A DNA stretch of 62,861 bases, counting the filler, from Octopus bimaculoides (lineage: Eukaryota), in NCBI RefSeq assembly GCF_001194135.2. It is 5 parts of 5 records of this genome, joined end to end, with 100 filler letters (N's around TTAATTAATTAA, not from the genome) between each part and the next. Parts side by side here need not be neighbours in the genome. Positions count along the whole stretch, not along the records: positions 23,897 to 39,181 come from NC_068992.1; 4 more parts are not named here. The stretch is one strand, 5' to 3'. This document shows positions 26,547 to 39,300 of the stretch, piece after piece (position 1 is the stretch's first letter; every line of letters begins with the position of its first letter). Position numbers and translations under genes: made by a program. Below the pieces are notes generated by a model. The model was given only the letters and a program-made list of their open reading frames with translations, had not been told where the DNA came from and ran no database searches.

Positions 26547-28224
26547 TTACGATAAATTAATTAAAAGTGTTTTCTCCTAAAAATTCAATCTAATTATACC
26601 TAAAGAAAAAGATACATAAAACAACCCTCAACGTCAACACTTCAAAAACCTAATAGAATATTTTAAATATGTTTTCACCGAAAAAATAAAAAAATACCAG
26701 CCCCCACCACACACAAACACATGCGCATACACACACACANNNNNNNNNNNNNNNNNNNNNNNNNNNNNNNNNNNNNNNNNNNNNNNNNNNNNNNNNNNNN
26801 NNNNNNNNNNNNNNNNNNNNNNNNNNNNNNNNNNNNNNNNNNNNNNNNNNNNNNNNNNNNNNNNNNNNNNNNNNNNNNNNNNNNNNNNNNNNNNNNNNNN
26901 NNNNNNNNNNNNNNNNNNNNNNNNNNNNNNNNNNNNNNNNNNNNNNNNNNNNNNNNNNNNNNNNNNNNNNNNNNNNNNNNNNNNNNNNNNNNNNNNNNNN
27001 NNNNNNNNNNNNNNNNNNNNNNNNNNNNNNNNNNNNNNNNNNNNNNNNNNNNNNNNNNNNNNNNNNNNNNNNNNNNNNNNNNNNNNNNNNNNNNNNNNNN
27101 NNNNNNNNNNNNNNNNNNNNNNNNNNNNNNNNNNNNNNNNNNNNNNNNNNNNNNNNNNNNNNNNNNNNNNNNNNNNNNNNNNNNNNNNNNNNNNNNNNNN
27201 NNNNNNNNNNNNNNNNNNNNNNNNNNNNNNNNNNNNNNNNNNNNNNNNNNNNNNNNNNNNNNNNNNNNNNNNNNNNNNNNNNNNNNNNNNNNNNNNNNNN
27301 NNNNNNNNNNNNNNNNNNNNNNNNNNNNNNNNNNNNNAAAAATACCACTCAAGTTTAATATGGATAGGGGTAACTAATGGATTTGTTGAAATAAAATTCT
27401 CCACATCCCCCAATCAGGAAACAATTTCAATACCTTAGGCTTGCCATTGCCCCGTGGTAATGCTGCGAGCCTGCTGGCTGGCTTCAGTAGGTTCCATTGA
27501 AACTTATGGTGTGCGACCAAATGTAGCACTTCATGCTGCATTGATATTTCTTTTGTCTCTCTCTTTCTCTTTCTTTCTCTCTTCTCTTTATCTTTTTTAT
27601 CTTGATTTTATTGTTTTCTTTGTCTTTCTTTTGTAAAACCTTATATTAAGGAAAAATAAGAATAAGAGATATTTTTTCATACAATAAATTTGATAGTAAT
27701 AAATAATAAATTCATTCCTGCAGCAGCTAGTGAGAACACCAGATGCTGTTTGATCTTGGGATGACTTTTTGTCTCCCTCTGATATACAGTGTTTTTAAAC
27801 AGTGCCTCCATAAGAGATTTTTCTTGAATAAAAACTGCAGCAACTGGCCTATCACCAGTGTATATACATTAAGTATGATAAATTGAAGGTTTATGTGTGT
27901 GAAATTTGAAACTAAACAACACCATTTGTTTTAAATTTCAAGGAAGTGATTTAGCTAATACTTTCAAATGCAAATAAATATGATTATTCACTTCATATGT
28001 CAAACAAAATATATTTCTCTACAAAAGATAAAGAACTGAAATTGTCCAACACTAATAAATTGTTTGTTTCTTTTTCTTAAATGTTGTCTTAAATAATTTA
28101 AAGAAATTACTTAAATGCATGAATTGTTGTTGTTGGCACTCCGACCCCATGGTTTGAATGAAACATTGGCTTTTTTTAACATCTTCAATGTTAACAACAA
28201 AAGTTTTGTTATGTATATATCTGC

Positions 28225-28328
28225 CAAATCAGATTGGAGCCTGGTGTAGCCATCTGGATCACCAGTCCTCAGTCAAATCGTCCAACCCATGCTAGCATGG
28301 AAAGCGGTTGTTAAACGATGATGATGAT
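28225..28328 (+). mobile_element. RTE LINE 3' terminus
   Basis: Reverse complement of 3748-3870, ending in (GAT)n. Confidence 0.8.
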
Positions 28329-28939
28329 ATCTATAAACCCAAGCATGTTTATTTTTCTGNNNNNNNNNNNNNNNNNNNNNNNNNNNNNNNNNNNNNNNNN
28401 NNNNNNNNNNNNNNNNNNNNNNNNNNNNNNNNNNNNNNNNNNNNNNNNNNNNNNNNNNNNNNNNNNNNNNNNNNNNNNNNNNNNNNNNNNNNNNNNNNNN
28501 NNNNNNNNNNNNNNNNNNNNNNNNNNNNNNNNNNNNNNNNNNNNNNNNNNNNNNNNNNNNNNNNNNNNNNNNNNNNNNNNNNNNNNNNNNNNNNNNNNNN
28601 NNNNNNNNNNNNNNNNNNNNNNNNNNNNNNNNNNNNNNNNNNNNNNNNNNNNNNNNNNNNNNNNNNNNNNNNNNNNNNNNNNNNNNNNNNNNNNNNNNNN
28701 NNNNNNNNNNNNNNNNNNNNNNNNNNNNNNNTATATATATATATATTGAGAGAGAGAGAAAGAGTAAAAATTATTTGCCAGAATAATGTGGCAGTCCTGG
28801 TTAGGAAGAATGTGACTGCTATTTAGACCCAGTAAACACTGTCTCCAGCTAGCTATCAACACACTATCTGCATCCTTATATTTTCAAACAAGGGAGTTTA
28901 GTGTCTCCACTCAGCTCTAAAGCAATATTTGCGTGCTGA

Positions 28940-29155
28940 TGAAGGTGGTGAGCTGGCAGAAACGTTAGCATGCCGGGGAAAATGCTTAGCGGTATTTCGT
29001 CTGTATTTACGTTCTGAGTTCAAATTCCACCGAGGTCGACTTTGCCGTTCATCCTTTCGGGGAGGATAAATTAAGTACCAGTTGCATACTGGGGTCAATC
29101 TAATTGACTGGCCCCTTCCCCCAAAATTTTAGGCCTTGTGCTTAGAGTAGAAACA
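28940..29155 (+). mobile_element. tRNA-derived SINE
   Basis: Same family as 15178. Confidence 0.8.
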
Positions 29156-29295
29156 AATATCCATGTACCCATGGTTTCTGGGTTATTTCCCCCCATCAGC
29201 ACAGAATAACTGCTCAGCTAGAGACAGTGACACTAAATTCTTGTTTGAAATATATATTTTTCAAAGTGATGCATGGTCACGGATCTTATAAATGG

Positions 29296-29607
29296 GAAAA
29301 ATATTACTTCTAAATCTCTGAATGAGAAACATTCAGTCACAGTACTTTAGAGTAAAGATTATTTGCCAACATAATGTGGCAGTCCGGGTTAGGACGAATG
29401 TTACTGTTATTTAGCCCCAGGAAACATCGTGCTAAACAAGGATGAAGATAGTGCATCAATAGCCAGCTGGAGACTATGTTTCCTGAAGCTAAATAACAGT
29501 AACATTCATCCTCATCAGGACTGACACATTATGTTGGCAAATAATCTTTACTCTAGAGTAACGTTACTAAGTCTTTCTCATTCAGAGATTTGGAAATAAT
29601 AGTTTTC
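29296..29607. repeat. Imperfect inverted repeat (arms 29296-29427 and 29476-29607)
   Basis: For example 'agagtaaagattatttgccaacataatgtg' versus 'cacattatgttggcaaataatctttactct'. A third copy lies at about 28752-28860. Confidence 0.85.
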
Positions 29608-31388
29608 TGTGTATTTATATATATATATATATATATNNNNNNNNNNNNNNNNNNNNNNNNNNNNNNNNNNNNNNNNNNNNNNNNNNNNNNNNNNNNNNNN
29701 NNNNNNNNNNNNNNNNNNNNNNNNNNNNNNNNNNNNGACAAAAGAAAGAAAAAGAAAACAAAGGAATACTAAGGATTGTTTTTGAAATTTTAAAATTCTG
29801 TTTGTTACTTTAAAGAACTTCCTGCTCTCAGTTACTATTCAAGTGAATTACACATAGACACATATGTCCATATACACATATATGTATATACAAATATATG
29901 CATTTATGCATAACACACACACATACACACACACATACATACACACACATACACACACATACACACACACGACACACACACATGTAATTAAAGCTGTACC
30001 AATACACTAAAATTAGACGCACACATGCACATACAATCTTGTTGACAAATCATATTACATCTCACTTTAGATCCAAGCCCAAAATTTTTTAGGAGTGGAT
30101 TAGATGTAGCTGTGTAGCACATACACATTGATTCTACACTCTTCATTAGAATTAGTTTATCAAACCAACGAAAGAACTAACAAGCAAACTGACCGCAACA
30201 AGATTTGAAATCAGAATATAAAGGATCAAAATTTAAAAAAAAAAACCATTTAGCTTGACGCTGTATTGATTCAGAGCAGTCACTGATTTGTGAAAATCAC
30301 ATTTTCAATTAACCAGTAAGTTTTGGTTTCTTATTTCCTCTACTTGTTTGTTTTTATCTTTTATCTTTCACTTGCTTCATTCATTAAACTGTAGAACATG
30401 CTGGGGCACAACCTTGAAGGGTTCAGGAGTTCTCAGCCATTTTTTTATCTACAGACCCCTTTCATTACTATTTTATTCTGGTTGACCCCCATCTCATTAC
30501 TATTCNNNNNNNNNNTATCTACAGACCCCTTTCATTACTATTTTATTCTGGTTGACCCCCATCTCATTACTATTCAATGTTCAAAAACTAGTTTTATAGA
30601 AACTTCTTTTACAAATTCCTATTTTGTTTTTCACACATTAACTTGAATAGGTTGAACCATATAAAATGTTAGAGAAAAACCACCCAGCTATTTCTTGCAA
30701 TACATAACAATACATACATCTAAAGCAAAATTTTTTCAGGGGCCTTTAAAATAGTATTGTGTTTCATCAGGAGTTAATTTTGCTAAAAACCAGTTTTGTG
30801 AGAATGGAGAGAGTTAATAAGCCTATTGAAGAAAGTTACACATTAGAATATTTAAACTGAAATCTCAACTCAAATGGTACTGTTAAGTTAATTATGACCA
30901 ACTCACTGAATCTGTCTAAAGTAGTGGTTGCTGCTTTGGTTTTACCTCCAAATCAACCCTATCTGGCAAAACTATGATCAAAAGGCATTCTCAGTGATAA
31001 TCTCAGTTTTCCCTACAAACATAGTGCCCCTAAGACTACTCTAACAAAAAAACCATCATTTTTTTAAAAGTGGTAATATTTGGATTATATTTCTAGCAGA
31101 TCATTTATGTAAAGCAACTGGCAGTGCTAAGTGGCCTGATTGTATAAGATTATTTGAGTAAATAATGTGTATAGTTAAGTACGGTTAAATATAAGAAACT
31201 ATTGGCACACGCAGTTTTAAATGAGAGCGTTTGATAAAAAAAGATTACTATAATCTAATCTATCAATTTTATTGTACTATAATTTTGATGGCCCATTACA
31301 CACTCTAGTTCGTGGGAGCCCACAAAGATAATCCTCCTCCTCCTCCTCGTCCTCCTCCTCCTCGTCCTCCTCGTCCTCGTCCTCCTCC

Positions 31389-31920
31389 TCCTCATCATCA
31401 TCATTTAATGTCTGCTTGGTTGGACAGTTTGACTGAAAACTGGTAAGCCAGGGGGCTGCATGAGGTTCCAATCTGATGTGGCAAGGTTTCTATAGCTGGA
31501 TGCCCTTCCTAATGCCAACCACTCCGAGAGTGTAGTGTGTGATTTTTTTACGTGCCAACAGCATGGGTGCCATTGACCTGGCACCAGCATCAGTCGCGAC
31601 TATGGTCTCACTTGGCTTGACAGGTCTACACAAAAGTCATGGTCGCCTGTCACTGCCTCCATGAGGCCTAACGCTCGGATGGTGCTTTGTACGTGCCACT
31701 GGCACGAGTGCCTGTTAGATGGCACTAACATCGGCTATGACCGTGATTTCACTTGGTTCAACAGGTCTTCACAAGCACAGCAAATCACCCAATGATTGAA
31801 GGGTGCTTTTAATGGGCTAGTTGCACTGGCATCAGCCACAACTATGATCTCACTTGGCTTAATGTCACTGCTTCCATGAGGCCCAATGCTCAAATGGTGC
31901 CTTTTACATTCACAGGCATG
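31389..31920 (-). mobile_element. RTE LINE 3' end, degenerate
   Basis: Homologous to 3750-4500 ('ctggatgcccttcctaatgccaacca'), with an (ATG)n tail. Confidence 0.8.
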
Positions 31921-32099
31921 TTTTCTATTTGTAGCCACTCTTAATTCTAGATTCACTGCTCCAATGAATTTTCATGTTTAAAATTATAAAATGATTTCTT
32001 AAAGAAATTTTTTTAAAAAGTGGAATGTGGGCTGCAATTGCTTAAATCTTGACAAGTGTATTATTTTATAAAATAAGAAAGGATAAAAAGACATATTTG

Positions 32100-32240
32100 A
32101 CCTGTACAGGTAAAATTCATCTGTGTCTTACACAAGTTCAGCTTTGTGGGTTTTGGAATGGGTTTAAATTTTAACCCATTTTCCAAGAGTTTAATTTCTT
32201 CTTTAGATAATATTTGTAATGGGAAATTTTGAGTAACTGT
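32100..32240 (-). mobile_element. Penelope-like RT N-terminal fragment
   Basis: 'LSKEEIKLLENGLKFKPIPKP' resembles the PLE motif LS..E..LL.KGL.F.P. Confidence 0.5.
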
Positions 32241-32316
32241 TCTGACTTTCAATAAAAAGTGATATATTTTCTCTATTTTCAAAAAGTCATTCAAATATTT
32301 TGTTTACTTTCAGATT

Positions 32317-32362
32317 ATGAATTGCATTTTCATTTTACTTTGTCTCCTGCAAATAGTTTACA
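32317..32362 (+). CDS. PLAT-like secreted protein gene, coding exon 1 (signal peptide)
   Basis: tttactttcag|ATT-ATG...TAC A|gtaagt encodes MNCIFILLCLLQIVY and ends in phase 1. Confidence 0.7.
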
Positions 32363-33019
32363 GTAAGTATTCTAACCTATAACTTCCTTCATGAATTCTT
32401 AAAATAATAATTTTCATCTCATCAAAACATATTTATATATATATANNNNNNNNNNNNNNNNNNNNNNNNNNNNNNNNNNNNNNNNNNNNNNNNNNNNNNN
32501 NNNNNNNNNNNNNNNNNNNNNNNNNNNNNNNNNNNNNNNNNNNNNNNNNNNNNNNNNNNNNNNNNNNNNNNNNNNNNNNNNNNNNNNNNNNNNNNNNNNN
32601 NNNNNNNNNNNNNNNNNNNNNNNNNNNNNNNNNNNNNNNNNNNNNNNNNNNNNNNNNNNNNNNNNNNNNNNNNNNNNNNNNNNNNNNNNNNNNNNNNNNN
32701 NNNNNNNNNNNNNAATAGCATAATACTACAGTTAATAACAACCATTGACATGAAAGATACAACTAATATTCAGAAAATCTTTGAACTAATATTGATTTTT
32801 AATTTTGATTTCTAATATTGGCACAAGGCCAGCAATTTTGGTAGAGAGTATATGTCCATTTCATTGAACCCAGTATTCAACTGGTACTTATTTTGTTGAC
32901 CCTGAAAGGATGAATGGCAAAGTCGACCTTGGCAGTCTTTTGAATAATATCAATTTTTCATCTAATGAATTTAAGTTTTTTTGTCCAATTTCTGACACTA
33001 ATTATCAATAATTCTTTAG

Positions 33020-33091
33020 GCTCCGTGGATCAGAATAAACATGCCCAGAGTGCAAAAGATCTACAAATACAGAACTATCCAATGCCAAAAG
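33020..33091 (+). CDS. PLAT-like secreted protein gene, exon 2
   Basis: tctttag|...AAAG|gtatg; 72 nt, phase 1-1; (S)SVDQNKHAQSAKDLQIQNYPMPK(G). Confidence 0.7.
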
Positions 33092-33289
33092 GTATGTTTT
33101 AGAATAATATATGTTTTAAGTATATTTGCAGTGTGCTACCAAATCAAATATTGTTTATTTTTTTTAATCTTGTGCTATCATCTGCTTCAATCTTAGCAAA
33201 ATATTAATAAACATCTGGTTACATCAGATTCAGGAAATTACATTTCCATTGTTTTCCCAAAATTGCAGTTACTGTCTCTGCAGTGATTC

Positions 33290-33490
33290 CTTATGGGCCA
33301 GGGGCTTTCCCTGTCATCATACTCTTAATTGCTTTATCTACCATGATACTGTCAACTCGGATAGCTGGTCCCTCTGTTGGGTCAACATTCGGCAGACTCT
33401 CTTTCTTCCATTCATTCTCTTTATTGAGCAATCTTTTGTAGTGGCATCTCCAAACCACTTTCTTTGCAGCCTCATTTAGTACAAGTGCAC
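33290..33490 (-). mobile_element. RTE LINE internal fragment
   Basis: 'WRCHYKRLLNKENEWKKESLPNVDPTEG' is nearly the same as ORF 6006-6242. Confidence 0.85.
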
Positions 33491-33723
33491 CACACAGCCA
33501 CACCTGCACCTATGCTATTTATATATTAGATATATATATATATGAACAAATGAGCATGTGCATTTTTTGCAATGATTTGATAAGCGGTGGCGAGTTTTAC
33601 AGTTCTGTAAATAATAATAATATTTTATAAGCTTAAAGCTTATAAGCGATCACTGTGTTTTGACTAAAGAAAATAGTCTATTATTGTGGCACAGAAACCC
33701 GCGACGGAAAAAAGTAGGTTTTC

Positions 33724-33789
33724 CATATGCGTGGGACTCGAACCCACATCTCTATTTTTTCATGGTATGTGTGCTGTCATTTACACTAA
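33724..33789 (-). other. tRNA-like (Pol III) head, probably a SINE remnant
   Basis: GTTAGTGTAAATG...GTGGGTTCGAGTCCCAC contains a T-arm/B-box. No complete cloverleaf is present. Confidence 0.45.
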
Positions 33790-33994
33790 CATACCCATTC
33801 AATTCTTCCTGTCAGATTTAAGAACTATAATTTCATAGTGTTGTTTTTAATAAACAAACGAGAATGTGCATTTTCTGAAATGATTTGATAAGTAGTTCTG
33901 AGTTTTACAATTCTATAATTTTGATAAGTAGTTCTGAGTTTTACAATTCTATAAATAATAATATTTTATAAGCTTAAAGCTTATAAGCTATCAC

Positions 33995-34235
33995 CTGTAT
34001 TGGTTTGTTCATGTTCCTGTAATATAGCGGTTTGGCAAAAGAGATTGATATAATAAGTACCAGGTTTTAAACAAGGTTTGTTCATGTTTCTTTAACATAG
34101 CGGTTTGGCAAAAGCGTTCGATACAATAAGTACCAGGCTTTAAACAATAAGTACTGGAGTCGATTTGTTCAACTAAAATCCTTTGAGGCGGTGCCCCAGA
34201 ATGGCCGTAGTTCAATGACTGAAAGAAGTAAAAAA
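33995..34235 (+). mobile_element. SINE 3' portion, duplicated at 37380-37562
   Basis: Same family as 13232; part of the tandemly duplicated gene segment. Confidence 0.7.
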
Positions 34236-34307
34236 CGGTGTACAAACAGTATTATTACAAACAGTCAATCTATGCAATAAACATTATCTCATTGTGCTTT
34301 GTTTCAG

Positions 34308-34564
34308 GTTACTGCTGGAGAATCACATTTTATATTTCAAGGAAACTTTTGTCTGGAACCTCAAACTATATCACTGTTCAATTAATCAATGATGAAACAC
34401 GAGTTTTCTCAAATAGATTACCCTGTTCAGATAAATGTGAAAGGGGATCTCAACCAAGCTTTTATTTTTGCACTCCACAAATTGATCCAGTAAAAGAAGT
34501 AAAATTAAATGAAACGGTAAAACATTTCTGGAATGGATTGACATCTGTTTGGAGATTGGAAAGC
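34308..34564 (+). CDS. PLAT-like gene exon A1
   Basis: gtttcag|GT TAC...GAA AGC|gtaagt; 257 nt, phase 1-0. Encodes YCWRITFYISRKLLSGTSNYITVQL...KCERGSQPSFYF...VKEVKL...WRLES, which resembles PLAT/LH2 (GT...V.+.L; ERG....F; W.L+.V). Confidence 0.8.
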
Positions 34565-34626
34565 GTAAGTATTTGGATAGAATTCTCATTTTTAATCCGT
34601 GTGTGTGTGTGTGTGTGTATGTGTGG

Positions 34627-34700
<74 letters not shown>

Positions 34701-34834
34701 ATGTGCGTGATTTTGCAGCATTATCATGTTACTCAAAAGGTCCTGTTTTCGATTCAGGTAATAACATATCAGTATCTAACTCCTTCTCTTACGGCTTTCA
34801 ATTCAGGTAAAGAAACAGGTACATAAATATAAGG

Positions 34835-35925
34835 ATATGAAAATATCTCCTTTTAATGTAGAACATAATCAACTAAAGTAACACCTGTTGGCACAAACAG
34901 AGTTAAGCTATCAACAGATATATTTCAGTGTGATAATCTTTTTATCTGTAATACTGTTTGTATTAGCAGTGAATCCCTTGTCAGCACTGTTAACAAAATG
35001 TGAAGGCTACATGCTGAGATATACAGGAAAGAATAAAGTTAATGTCATCCACACATTTTTTGTTGATGACGTAAAGTGTAATATGATCAGCATCAAGAGA
35101 CAATTAGAACTACACGAGATAAAGGAATGGAGTTAAGCTAGATAAATGCTTATACATGATAGTCAATCGAGGAAAGATTGTTGACCAGACACAGAACATG
35201 AACATCAACAGCTTGTCATCTCCCCAATTTCTAATGATAAAATCTACAATTACCTCGGAATCGATGAGAATGTTGCATACGTTGGTGCGGTGACTAAAGC
35301 CGGTAAAGCAACAGAATACTTCTGTAGACTCCCGAAAATATGGGATGTCTGCATTTAACCATATCTCACAATGCTTTTGCAGTACAATTGCTAATACCAA
35401 TATTTGAGATATTGGATTGGATACTTGATGAGATACACAGTCTGGATATGAAAACCAGAAAGGTACTGACCACCCCTGGCAACTTCCATATTAACAACGA
35501 CACCGATAGGATATATGTGAGATGAAATGATGGCAGTAGAGGCATAAGGTCAATCCAAAAACCCTTTGGAATTCGCATTGTATCACTCAGACAACACCAG
35601 CTGAACAGTAAAGAAAGAAATGAGTACGTTCCATGCATACTCAAAAGGGAGAGCAACAACATTGTCAGAGTGGTAGAACTACTGAGTAGGTGCTCTGAGA
35701 ATACAGCTATCTTATGCAACAACCCAATGGAGACTGGACTGGCCAACTTAAACAGAAGCTTGAAGGAGAAGCAGGTATCATACCAGCAAAAAGCAATGCA
35801 TGGGTACATATCCCATAAGATAGAGAGCAACAACAGTATTGACAGGAAGAGCAGTCTCTCCTGGGCCCACAATAGATACATTACAACCCAGATACTCCTT
35901 TGTGCTGATTTCAAGCTAGATTCAA
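34835..35925 (+). mobile_element. R4/Dong-type LINE RT fragment, degraded
   Basis: 'LFVLAVNPLS', 'HTFFVDDVK', 'YNYLGIDE', 'LDMKTRKVLT...DRIYV...RGI'. Confidence 0.75.
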
Positions 35926-35929
35926 TGAA

Positions 35930-36300
35930 TTGAGAATCCATGACACTTCCATCATTCGCCATGGCTCCAGGTACCAACACAAAGGCAGAAATTTTAGTCT
36001 CAAACACAGTAGGGATGTCAGAAGAGTTATATGCAATTACTCGAGAATTTCTGCGATTCACCTCAGCATCCACAGTGAACTTCTTCTCAACCACAAACAT
36101 GAGAGTTTTTAAGGCACCTTGATGCTTGACGAATGACAGAAGCTTTGAGCATCTCTTAGCTCTGATTGCTTTGCCCTTGGCTGTTAGTAGGTGACGGTGT
36201 CGTCGAACACGGCTAGTCATGCCAAGGTTCCTGTTCACAGCTCAGATCACCGTGGAAAGGGACACATTGCATTTCATTGAAAGAGTTGTCATGGATGTGA
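35930..36300 (-). mobile_element. maT/mariner-like transposase fragment
   Basis: 'EKKFTVDAEVNRRNSRVIA...PTVFETK...VLVPGAMANDG' resembles DEK.F.V...N.QN.R...VMVWG. Confidence 0.6.
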
Positions 36301-36369
36301 ATGGGTTGGGTTCAGTCCAGCGTGTGTTACATGCAACGTGCTTTACATTTTTATTTCATTTCTTTGCAG

Positions 36370-36463
36370 ATTGATTTGATGAACTTGAATACTTCAGCTA
36401 ATTATAGATGCACACTCGATAACCCTGATGCCGACGAAAAAGGCTGTAAACTAAATCCCACAG
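36370..36463 (+). CDS. PLAT-like gene exon B1
   Basis: tctttgcag|ATT...ACA G|gtaaat; 94 nt, phase 0-1; IDLMNLNTSANYRCTLDNPDADEKGCKLNPT. Confidence 0.75.
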
Positions 36464-36526
36464 GTAAATTATAACATATGTCTATGTAGTTAATGAGCTA
36501 TACACATAGACAAATATATATATATT

Positions 36527-36846
36527 ATAATTATACCATATGTTACATATAAAATCATACCTTGATACTGTGTGGGCTAAAATCCCTGTTGACAGGCCGC
36601 TGATATTTATAGGGTGTTAAACACTTTATGTATGCAAATTAGAGACTCCTTGATAGAGTAACTGCTGCATTTGTTGAGTATATAAACAGTTTGGCTGCTT
36701 GTTTCTCTGGAGACTGTCAGAATGATGCAGATGCCTCTGATGAGAACCCAACAAGGTTCGAAAATTGATTAAAGCTATTCATTAATTTTTATCAATCTGC
36801 AGAGAAGTGGCTAAAATTTGCCCTGTTCATAATTATACCATATGTT
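36527..36846 (+). mobile_element. PLE pLTR-like insertion bounded by 18-bp direct repeats, with a degenerate hammerhead at 36733-36775
   Basis: ATAATTATACCATATGTT occurs at 36527-36544 and 36829-36846. The insert is absent from the paralogous intron at 38880-38931. Motif: CUGAUGA-GAACC-CAACAA-GGUUC-GAAA. Confidence 0.6.
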
Positions 36847-36856
36847 CTGTACACAG

Positions 36857-36915
36857 AAAGAGAAGGAGAAATCATTACCAATCCAAACAAGTATTTGTGT
36901 AGAAGAAATGAATGA
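36857..36915 (+). CDS. PLAT-like gene putative terminal exon C1
   Basis: ctgtacacag|AA AGA...GAA TGA; phase 1; (E)REGEIITNPNKYLCRRNE*. The stop and Cys are conserved in C2. Confidence 0.45.
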
Positions 36916-37318
36916 GGTTAAAAAATAGACTGTCAATGGAGATAGTACAAATATACAATGAGCTATTTTCAGGTTCTATCTACCAAATCCACTCACAATG
37001 CTTTCATCAGTTCGGTGTTATAATAGAAGACACTTGTCCAAGGTGCTGTGAATAGGATGGAATGCAAACCCACATGGTTTGGAAGTAAGCTTCACAACTA
37101 CACAGACATACCTGTGCCTCAAAAATATTTATTAAGTAGTTTTAAATATGGACGCAAATGTGGCTATGTAGTAGGAAGTTTACTTTTCCAGCACACACAT
37201 GATTCTGAGTTCAATCCTACTGCTTGACACCTAGGGCAAATGTCTTTTACCATAGCCTCAGGCCAACCAAAGCTTTGTGGGTAGATTTAACGAAGATGCC
37301 CATCCTATATGTATATGT

Positions 37319-37350
<32 letters not shown>

Positions 37351-37634
37351 CTTTGCATTTGTGTTTGCCTCACAATCACTACCTGACCACCAGTATTGGT
37401 TTGTTCACATTCCTGTAACATAGCAGTTTGACAAAAGAGATTGATATAATAAATACCAGGTTTTAAGCAATAAGTACTGGAGTCGATTCGTTCAACTAAA
37501 ATCCTTCGAGGCGGTGCCCCAGCATGGCCGTAGTTCAATGACTGAAAGAAGTAAAAGATAAAATGTATACAAACAGTATTATTACAAGCAGTCAATCTAT
37601 GCAATAAACATTATCTCATTGTGCTTTGTTTCAG

Positions 37635-37891
37635 GTTACTGCTGGAGAATCAAATTCTATATTTCAAGGAAACTTTTGTCTGGAACCTCAAACTATATCA
37701 CTGTTCAATTAATCAATGATGAAACACGTGTTTTCTCAAATAGATTATCTTGTGCAAAAAAATGTAAAAGGGGATCTCAACCAAGCTTTTATTTTTGCAC
37801 TCCACAAATTGATCCAGTAAAAGAATTACAATTAAATGAAACGGTAAAAAATTTCTGGAAGGGATTTGTATCTGGTTGGACATTGGAAAGT
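37635..37891 (+). CDS. PLAT-like gene exon A2 (duplicate of A1)
   Basis: Same splice sites and length as A1; 19 nt differences; no stop codons. Confidence 0.8.
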
Positions 37892-38552
37892 GTAAGTATT
37901 TGGATAGAATTCTCATTTTTAATCCATGTGTGTGTGTGTTTTAGTGTGACTCTGTAAGTGAGGTTGTGAGTTCGCTTCCGGAACTTGGCTGTGCGTTGTA
38001 TTCTTGAGCAAGACACTTTATTTCACGTTGCTCCAGTTCACTCAGCTGCAGAAATGAGTTGTGACATCTCTGATGCCAATGGAAGATACACAAGAGGTGA
38101 GAACACAACCTGCATGGAGGATCATAGAGCAGCAGAGGTCCTCTGTAAAGGGGAGCAGACAATGCAAGCTTTGCATAGCAGTGCAAGCAAGGATCCTTAA
38201 AGACTTGCTGGGCTTGCAGTCTCTCTTATACACAAGACATGAGGTCTATAGTCCATGCCCCCATTTTAAATGCTACCTGCTGCAGGTGTGGGATATCTAG
38301 TTTTATGATTAGGGCTGTAAAAAGTATTTGCAGACCGGAATCAACCTAAGGGCAGAGGTTGCCTGTTCATCCTTTAAATCCATAAGATCTTCCAACCAGA
38401 CCTGTCAATGGGTGATAACCTATCTCGTTTACAGGTCAGACAGTGTACTTACTGCTCTAAATTTTAGAGTGTGCTTCTTTTTAGGATATATGATCCACTC
38501 ACTATATATATATCATCATCATCATCGTCGTCGTCCATCTCTCTATCTCTCT

Positions 38553-38715
38553 TGGCTGTGTGGTAAGCAGCTTGCTTACCAGTCACATGGTTCCGGGTTC
38601 AGTTCCACTGCGTGGCATCTTAGGCAAATGTCTTCTACTATAGCCTCGGGCCGACCNNNNNNNNNNCAGCATGGCCGCAGTCAAATGACTGAAACAAGTT
38701 AAAGAGTAAAGAGTA
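38553..38715 (+). mobile_element. tRNA-derived SINE, second family (gap inside)
   Basis: 'ggctgtgtggtaagcagcttgc...ggttccgggttcagttccactgcgtggca'. Related copies at 37160-37290 (+) and 24650-24730 (-). Confidence 0.7.
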
Positions 38716-38785
38716 AAGAGTATATGTTTGTGTGCATGTGTGTTAAATGCAACATGCTTTACATATTTGTTTCACTTTTTTGCAG

Positions 38786-38879
38786 ATTGATTTGATGAAC
38801 TTGAATACTTCAGCTGAATATAGATGCACACTCGATTACCCTGGTGCCGAGAAAAAAGGCTGTAAACTAAATCCCGCAG
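38786..38879 (+). CDS. PLAT-like gene exon B2 (duplicate of B1)
   Basis: tttttgcag|ATT...GCA G|gtaaat; IDLMNLNTSAEYRCTLDYPGAEKKGCKLNPA. Confidence 0.75.
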
Positions 38880-38931
38880 GTAAATTATATCCCATGTCTA
38901 TGTAGTTAGCAAGCTATATATATGTATACAG

Positions 38932-39059
38932 AGAGTGACAGAGAGAGAGAGAGAGAAAGAAAGAAAGAAAGAGGGGGAGAGAGAAAGCTGGGGAGAGAGA
39001 AAGCTGGGGGAGAAATCATTACTGATCCAAACAAGTTTCTGTGTAGAAGAAGTAAATGA
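38932..39059 (+). CDS. PLAT-like gene putative terminal exon C2
   Basis: gtatacag| acceptor; a GA-rich expansion stays in frame to GEIITDPNKFLCRRSK*. The implied intron is only 52 nt. Confidence 0.35.
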
Positions 39060-39300
39060 AGTTGAAGATGCTTGGAGAATATATGAAATTATTTGAATTT
39101 TAATACATACATAATACATCATTATCATCATTGTGTAACGTTCATCTTTCATGTATGCATGAGTAGGAAACACACACACATNNNNNNNNNNNNNNNNNNN
39201 NNNNNNNNNNNNNNNNNNNNNNNNNTTAATTAATTAANNNNNNNNNNNNNNNNNNNNNNNNNNNNNNNNNNNNNNNNNNNNTACATTAATCGTATTTCGG

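Follow-up and report, generated by a model that had tools for sequence, protein, structure and literature searches.

On balance, the gene LOC106876762 of Octopus bimaculoides appears to encode a secreted protein built of three divergent PLAT-like modules, which would bind surfaces through their loops, the protein being a soluble member of a receptor-like family. Its first six exons lie in the window, by which we mean the whole stretch of 62,861 nucleotides (nt) that was analyzed, within the piece at positions 23,897-39,181 (NC_068992.1 = CM046612.1:8,767,613-8,782,897 in assembly GCA_001194135.2). The reading draws on the structure of the gene, the anatomy of its repeated unit, the predicted fold of that unit, the pattern of its evolution, and the cluster in which the gene stands. 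Coordinates are those of the window unless they are prefixed with L002, our handle for the genome locus, in which case the window coordinate equals the L002 coordinate plus 22316; L001 and L003 are O. vulgaris loci, the first of them from a gap-free assembly (no N).

Gene structure and full-length product

The part of the gene within the piece consists of a signal-peptide exon, a linker exon, and two pairs of exons, called A and B, each pair encoding one unit:

32317-32362 (+): exon 1, start ATG and signal peptide (MNCIFILLCLLQIVY plus 1 base); 46 nt, donor gtaagt, end phase 1
33020-33091 (+): exon 2, 24-residue linker after the signal peptide (SSVDQNKHAQSAKDLQIQNYPMPK-G); 72 nt, donor gtatgt, phase 1 to 1
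34308-34564 (+): exon 3 (A1), first 85.7 codons of PLAT-like unit 1; 257 nt, donor gtaagt, phase 1 to 0
36370-36463 (+): exon 4 (B1), last 31 codons of unit 1; 94 nt, donor gtaaat, phase 0 to 1
37635-37891 (+): exon 5 (A2), start of PLAT-like unit 2, a tandem duplicate of A1; phases as in A1
38786-38879 (+): exon 6 (B2), end of unit 2; donor gtaaat, end phase 1

Each of exons 1 to 4 ends at a GT donor, each of exons 2 to 4 follows an AG acceptor behind a pyrimidine tract, and the end phases of the four are 1, 1, 0, and 1. With a slash at the junction, the boundaries read TTTACA/gtaagt for exon 1, ttctttag/GCTCCG...CAAAAG/gtatgt for exon 2, tttgtttcag/GTTACT...GAAAGC/gtaagt for exon 3, and ttctttgcag/ATTGAT...CCACAG/gtaaat for exon 4. 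Exon 1 matches residues 1-16 of XP_014780936.1 at 100%. The initial annotation of this DNA had proposed these four exons with canonical splice sites and compatible phases, and they are present exactly as it gave them, with a product identical to the RefSeq protein. It had also stated that the gene escapes the track of open reading frames (ORFs), which is partly true, but both A exons sit in listed ORFs (34238-34810 and 37619-37957).

An A+B pair has 351 nt and encodes a unit of 117 residues, in which A1 covers predicted strands 1 to 5 and the start of strand 6, and B1 holds the rest of strand 6, strands 7 and 8, the NTS sequon, Cys100, and Cys112. The second pair in the window has the same splice sites and phases as the first, and the two units share 98 of 117 residues (84% protein identity). 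The gap-free O. vulgaris locus L001 agrees with this gene in the order of its exons (signal peptide, linker, A, B), in their boundaries, and in their phases. The end of B2, in phase 1 and with a GT donor, shows that the gene is not complete within the piece, which stops at an assembly gap (39181); the gene resumes beyond 1222 N. The remaining exons are as follows:

L002 18445-18567: optional 123-nt linker exon, isoform X1 only (ANAKEPAIPY...SVL)
L002 19911-20167: A3, unit 3
L002 21634-21727: B3, unit 3, donor gtaaat
L002 22788-22801: terminal 14-nt coding exon (...VIAM, then stop)

Over its 273 residues, the product encoded by the six exons has 100% identity to XP_014780936.1 (394 residues), which is isoform X2 of O. 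bimaculoides LOC106876762 and is listed in UniProt as A0A0L8GI40, with the label "Ig-like domain-containing protein." Hence, the gene is not hidden, as had been supposed: it is already public as RefSeq isoforms X1 and X2 and four UniProt entries (A0A0L8GI40, GHW4, GHR7, and GJ50), and it is uncharacterized. Nor is the product a small protein of four exons. The full public models have 394 to 434 residues, and the 394-residue model is laid out as signal peptide, linker, and three 117-residue units, the third of which lies beyond the piece; the optional exon of isoform X1, between units 2 and 3, is stalk-like. The suggestion that the protein stands alone, without a known large PLAT enzyme, agrees with the public models, none of which has an enzyme or channel domain.

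In two public UniProt isoforms (P0002 and P0006), B2 follows A1 directly, so that 351 nt (B1 plus A2) are skipped in frame. This joining is possible because the phases are symmetric, and it produces a hybrid module and a two-unit protein. These isoforms could represent a cassette-like alternative splicing of half-domains or a two-unit haplotype. We also considered a haplotig or an allelic misassembly as the source of units 1 and 2, which is unlikely because the units differ by ~8%, the transcript-based public models show three units, and a more diverged third unit lies downstream.

Predicted fold of the 117-residue unit

AlphaFold2 models of units 1 and 2 (117 residues) are eight-stranded and all-beta, with a predicted local distance difference test score (pLDDT) of 72 and a predicted template modeling score (pTM) of 0.68-0.69. 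When both models were compared with the PDB by Foldseek, only PLAT-bearing chains were among the best 50 matches. The best of these were chains of coral 8R-lipoxygenase, 3fg4_A (E 1.9e-4, template modeling [TM] score 0.75) and 3fg3_D (E 1.4e-5, TM score 0.76), aligned over 117-119 columns, and further matches included 5-, 12-, and 15-lipoxygenases, pancreatic lipase and related proteins, lipoprotein lipase (LPL), and Rab6IP1. The matches are identified by chain, and PLAT is the sole domain common to lipoxygenases, lipases, and Rab6IP1.

A second line of evidence comes from sequence profiles. The profile of the units was searched exhaustively with HMMER, with no word index, against 1.84 billion representative proteins, which yielded four Octopus proteins followed by a few weak matches. 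Outside Octopus, no relative rose above noise in this search, with the exception of a link to PLAT. This link is P0011, a protist protein with EML and 13 PLAT repeats, in which residues 1447-1538 matched query positions 4-98 (E 9e-5). The matched segment is one of the 13 Pfam-verified PLAT repeats, and outside the octopus proteins no other match extended over nearly the full length of the unit. The other remote matches (P0008-P0010, P0012, and P0013) were set aside as short stretches within repeat proteins (ankyrin, SprB, Calx-beta, and DUF5018). Alignment of the units with ten PLAT repeats of P0011 by hhalign was colinear over 92 columns (77% probability, E 2e-5) and paired hallmark motifs of the two, namely SGTSN with AGTDA, ERGSQPSF with ERGxxDxF, and WRLESI with WHLxxV.

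From the models and the profile alignment we conclude that the unit is presumably a very divergent PLAT-like domain, one that stays below the threshold of PF01477. The by-eye PLAT call of the initial annotation is thus borne out by the predicted structures, in which PLAT-bearing chains alone fill the best 50 Foldseek matches, and weakly by the sequence profile, but not by the Pfam model, as HMMER found no match to PF01477.

Probable secretion, cysteines, and glycosylation sites

The N terminus, which had been described as hydrophobic, behaves as a signal peptide in a heuristic check: a short polar start is followed by the h-region IFILLCLLQIV (mean Kyte-Doolittle value 3.15) and by a single -3/-1 site, VYS/S. 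No other 19-residue window in the 394 residues is comparably hydrophobic. Secretion is likely on these sequence features.

Each unit of the O. bimaculoides gene has six cysteines, at positions 3, 40, 44, 55, 100, and 112. The initial annotation had counted six cysteines per A+B unit together with NET and NTS sequons, and all are present in this gene, but across the six family units that we aligned from O. bimaculoides and O. vulgaris only Cys40, Cys44, Cys100, and Cys112 are invariant; another residue stands in for Cys3 in some copies and for Cys55 in some. Both sequons are invariant in all six units. The signature of the family is an A exon of 257 nt (phase 1 to 0), a B exon of 94 nt (phase 0 to 1), and, in the encoded unit, C40/C44/C100/C112, NET, and NTS. 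The four invariant cysteines probably form two disulfides. We infer that the signal peptide would be cleaved, the sequons glycosylated, and the disulfides formed.

Evolution of the units

A1 and A2 are identical at 238 of 257 nt (92.6%), and the flanking intron is identical at ~91%. Units 1 and 2 arose by a recent duplication, judged by a synonymous divergence (dS) of 0.06 between them; the corresponding values are 0.12-0.21 for the O. vulgaris unit and 0.16 for unit 3. The ratio of nonsynonymous to synonymous divergence (dN/dS) is 0.7-1.4 in all pairwise comparisons. Between the species, the A exon has 86% identity and the flanking intron 86-87.5%; gap positions number 0 in the A exon and 16-37 in the flanking intron.

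All six units have intact frames and splice sites and are free of stops, and their one length change is an in-frame 12-nt deletion in a loop. More than half of the columns (60 of 117) are invariant, including the four cysteines, both sequons, and the core hydrophobic residues. Trials that left a unit without stops made up only 21%, 10%, and 5% when random substitutions were simulated at the observed numbers. Variation is concentrated at residues 12-16, 72-81, and 101-109, which are low-pLDDT loops rich in Phe, Trp, Leu, and Lys. Judged from these alignments, the pattern is one in which the frame and the core are kept and the surface changes fast.

Gene cluster and paralogues

LOC106876762 lies in a small same-strand tandem cluster, the other members of which are type-I membrane proteins. 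Related to it are LOC106876757 (P0003) in O. bimaculoides and CAI9731026 (P0004) and CAI9731029 (P0007) in O. vulgaris; the genes of the latter two are ~200 kb apart on one chromosome. P0004 and P0007 each have one unit, a Thr/Ser-rich stalk, a transmembrane helix, and a cytoplasmic tail with Tyr motifs, and P0003 has the unit and the stalk, with no transmembrane helix or tail in its public model.

Of the paralogue that precedes LOC106876762, the tail exon alone was found in the piece:

26072-26546 (+): last coding exon of the preceding paralogue, cytoplasmic tail; acceptor ttttcttag/ at 26071

This exon encodes (R)HRCKKSGSNLTSEEMTEKSTT...MESRHK and a stop codon, with repeated D/E-N-x-Y-S-V motifs (of the type CMV[ED]DN-x-YSVA), and has ~62% identity to the tail of P0004 and 60% to that of P0007. 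The Tyr motifs may be phosphotyrosine signaling sites. Five more N gaps interrupt the upstream part of the piece, 23897-32316 (25119-25718, 26740-27337, 28360-28731, 29637-29736, and 30506-30515), and the stalk and transmembrane exons of the preceding paralogue may be hidden in them.

The next paralogue starts 7.7 kb past the stop codon of LOC106876762, with a signal-peptide exon (L002 30480-30527) that is 100% identical over 16 residues. A stretch of ~700 nt of upstream sequence (window 29809-30505) is duplicated at L002 26260-26940 with 80% identity, and therefore the segmental duplication took in the putative promoter region. In a relaxed tblastn search of these 7.7 kb, from the stop to the next paralogue, queries of transmembrane, tail, and stalk sequence brought up no exon. 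Because no second stalk, transmembrane, or tail exon precedes the next gene, LOC106876762 looks like a soluble derivative. A weak stalk-like match downstream of the stop, at L002 24283-24327, is not an exon.

The O. vulgaris models CAI9731026.1 and CAI9731029.1 are misannotated, in that their A exons are cut or left out, yet the exons are intact in the DNA (L001 39547-39803 and L003 7915-8166). A better linker exon is present in the O. vulgaris DNA at L001 28723-28791, and CAI9731026.1, which spans 83 kb, may fuse pieces of more than one gene. A literature search with the gene, protein, and UniProt identifiers, and for the PLAT domain in octopus, found nothing relevant.

Alternative readings

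Several observations weigh against the reading that we favor, and we set them out beside the alternatives that they would serve. The signal-peptide check was a crude one, a Kyte-Doolittle profile with a -3/-1 heuristic. At the other end of the protein, the C terminus (...NPK-VIAM, then stop) rests on a predicted splice to a 14-nt coding exon, and a gap of 240 N (L002 24828-25067) lies downstream of the gene. Because of this gap and the predicted-only terminal splice, some room is left for a membrane-anchored product, in which the transcript continues past unit 3 into a stalk, a transmembrane segment, and a tail, the VIAM end being an annotation artifact or that of a minor isoform. We regard such a product as unlikely, albeit the most serious alternative. 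The membrane anchors and tails of P0004 and P0007 and the tail exon of the preceding O. bimaculoides paralogue would be its precedents; P0003 shows a stalk and, in its public model, neither membrane segment nor tail; isoform X1 keeps its stalk-like exon between units 2 and 3, and the donor of B3 (gtaaat) is as good as those of the other B exons, with assembly gaps downstream. However, the 7.7 kb up to the next paralogue gave tblastn no transmembrane, tail, or stalk exon (the one weak match not being an exon), and the VIAM stop is where RefSeq and each of the four UniProt models end.

It is improbable that the unit has some other beta-sandwich (Ig-like or C2) or an unrelated fold and that its PLAT match is an artifact of a medium-confidence model. 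This view can call on the UniProt label "Ig-like domain-containing protein," which all four entries bear, and on Pfam, which sees no PLAT: hmmscan of the 273-residue product and of a single unit gave no match to the PLAT clan even at E<=10, and the gathering score of PF01477 was not reached. Sequence searches of the PDB with a single unit (phmmer) and with the profile also gave no match. The AlphaFold2 models are of medium confidence, reach only pLDDT 72, and were built on a shallow alignment of only 5-6 closely related family sequences; the match to P0011 is a lone remote one among similar-scoring false matches in repetitive proteins; and against what we take to be the N-terminal sequence of 5-lipoxygenase (5-LOX), hhalign gave a probability of 2% only. 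Yet Pfam matched no Ig, C2, or other sandwich family either, two independent models retrieved PLAT-bearing chains only among their best 50 Foldseek matches, and the colinear 92-column alignment with a Pfam-verified PLAT repeat, hallmark motifs included, is a sequence link independent of the models. Sub-threshold Pfam matches to Big defensin (E 0.011), GUCT, and similar families were treated as noise. The "Ig-like" label, which probably stems from a PROSITE profile, is unsupported, as there is no Ig family in the Pfam result and no Ig chain among the best 50 Foldseek matches.

Finally, a dN/dS near 1, an exon identity equal to that of the intron between species, and the loss of Cys3 and Cys55 each in some copies also fit a decaying sequence, that is, a young duplicate array that is transcribed but dispensable and drifts neutrally, without maintained function, toward a pseudogene, but this is hardly probable for six units in two species that keep their frames, splice sites, and half of their columns through a single in-frame length change, next to introns with 16-37 gap positions, when the joint probability of their being stop-free under neutrality is low in simulation.

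Proposed function

In the reading that we prefer, a secreted protein of three PLAT-like modules, the signal peptide would be cleaved after Ser16, as predicted, and a short linker would lead into three tandem 117-residue modules. Each module would be a divergent eight-stranded beta-sandwich of the PLAT/LH2 type, adapted to the extracellular space, N-glycosylated, and stabilized by disulfides. There would be no transmembrane segment, the protein ending a few residues past module 3. The gene would most likely have arisen as a soluble, multivalent derivative of the receptor-like family through an exon-pair duplication, which we consider recent because the dS of units 1 and 2 is lower than that of either to the O. 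vulgaris copy.

We hypothesize that the loops at the tip of the sandwich (12-16, 72-81, and 101-109) would contact a membrane, lipid, or protein surface, as in the PLAT domains of lipoxygenases, lipases, and alpha-toxin. These loops are the most variable parts of the family and include the in-frame indel. A weak alignment to the presumed 5-LOX sequence places loops 12-16 and 72-81 at the membrane-inserting Trp loops, and we take this as a lead only. Three modules in tandem could provide avidity. Because the overall dN/dS is near neutral, the frame and the core are strictly preserved, and the family is restricted to Octopus, we propose a fast-evolving role in extracellular recognition (immune, or another form of self/non-self or surface sensing) rather than in housekeeping lipid metabolism. 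The initial annotation had seen a candidate venom, skin, or immune effector here, and the protein may also be considered for a chemosensory role.

A bolder version, which we consider doubtful, would make the whole cluster a hitherto unrecognized, octopus-specific class of cell-surface receptors with a disulfide-bonded PLAT ectodomain, a mucin-like stalk, and a phosphotyrosine-type tail. LOC106876762 would then be their soluble trivalent form, acting as an opsonin, a decoy, or a carrier of lipid ligands, and diversifying selection would act on the hypervariable aromatic and basic loops for their recognition of surface lipids of microbes or prey.

If the fold assignment is true, the PLAT/LH2 family gains an extracellular, glycosylated, and disulfide-stabilized form, which a receptor-like family would use as its ectodomain and a soluble protein would carry in tandem repeats. 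A testable label would then replace the uninformative "uncharacterized" and "Ig-like," and the practical gain would be a clear hypothesis of loop-mediated recognition of lipids or membranes. The family is a concrete addition to the lineage-restricted, fast-evolving gene clusters of cephalopods, the functions of which are largely unknown. It introduces no new biological principle, and the gene model itself was already public.

Assembly gaps and repeats around the exons

Two gaps lie among the exons within the piece:

32446-32713 (strand not applicable): assembly gap of 268 N, inside intron 1
38657-38666 (strand not applicable): assembly gap of 10 N in the A2-B2 intron, inside a copy of a SINE-like repeat

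Both are harmless to the gene model because they are intronic and touch no exon or frame. Both flanks of the second gap align, colinearly and without a change of strand, with a full copy of the repeat, at 37161-37268 (left flank) and 37520-37562 (right flank). The assembly lacks ~250 nt of repeat there, and the join is sound.

The repeat is interspersed and resembles a short interspersed nuclear element (SINE) (...ggcggtgccccagcatggccgtagttcaatgactgaaagaagtaaaa...), with a full copy at 37161-37562 and partial copies at 33992-34240 and 38553-38710. Each of the two A exons has it directly upstream, and the duplication of the exon pair included part of it. (GT)n microsatellites are present at 34598-34700, 37310-37350, and 37925-37940; tracts begin ~35 nt past each A-exon donor, and another lies upstream of A2. 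These microsatellites may have promoted the unequal crossing-over behind the duplication of the exon pair.

Decayed intronic frames at 34888-35900 (+) and 33250-33520 (-) have a by-eye, unconfirmed likeness to the reverse transcriptase of retrotransposons without long terminal repeats (FFVDD, YLGI, and GKAPGP). Pfam gave no match for these frames, nor for a 290-residue intronic ORF at 35366-36238 (-) or other intronic ORFs, and tRNA and Rfam scans of the piece found nothing.

Comparison with known systems

In the proteins from which it is mainly known, namely lipoxygenases, lipases, polycystins, and cytosolic repeat proteins, PLAT is an accessory domain. The octopus unit resembles the PLAT/LH2 domain of lipoxygenases and lipases (PF01477) in its size (~115 residues), its eight strands, and a predicted superposition over the whole unit (TM score 0.70-0.76), and the motifs G-T-[DS], E-R-G...F, and W-x-L-x-x-[VI] are conserved in it. 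It differs from the solved PLAT domains in having only 10-18% identity to them, in being unrecognized by the Pfam model, and in having no catalytic domain attached. Moreover, it would be extracellular, with four invariant cysteines and two N-glycan sequons per unit, and SGTSN takes the place of the acidic calcium-binding positions (AGTDA).

The head-to-tail repetition of PLAT modules is shared with LOXHD1 and with P0011. LOXHD1 is a large cytosolic protein without a signal peptide. P0011 is likewise large, cytosolic, and without a signal peptide, whereas the octopus protein has three units, a signal peptide, sequons, cysteines, and paralogues with a transmembrane anchor. With Ig-like domains the octopus unit has in common an extracellular beta-sandwich, often in tandem, with cysteines and N-glycans; unlike them, it has no Ig match in Pfam or among the best 50 Foldseek matches. 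A further known system comes from plants. Arabidopsis PLAT1, a PLAT-plant-stress protein, is a small PLAT-only protein behind a predicted secretory signal peptide and is associated with the endoplasmic reticulum (PMC4232524). The octopus protein shares this arrangement of PLAT alone behind a predicted signal peptide, but the PLAT-plant-stress proteins are plant proteins with a single domain that standard PLAT models recognize, and they have no detectable sequence relationship to the octopus family.

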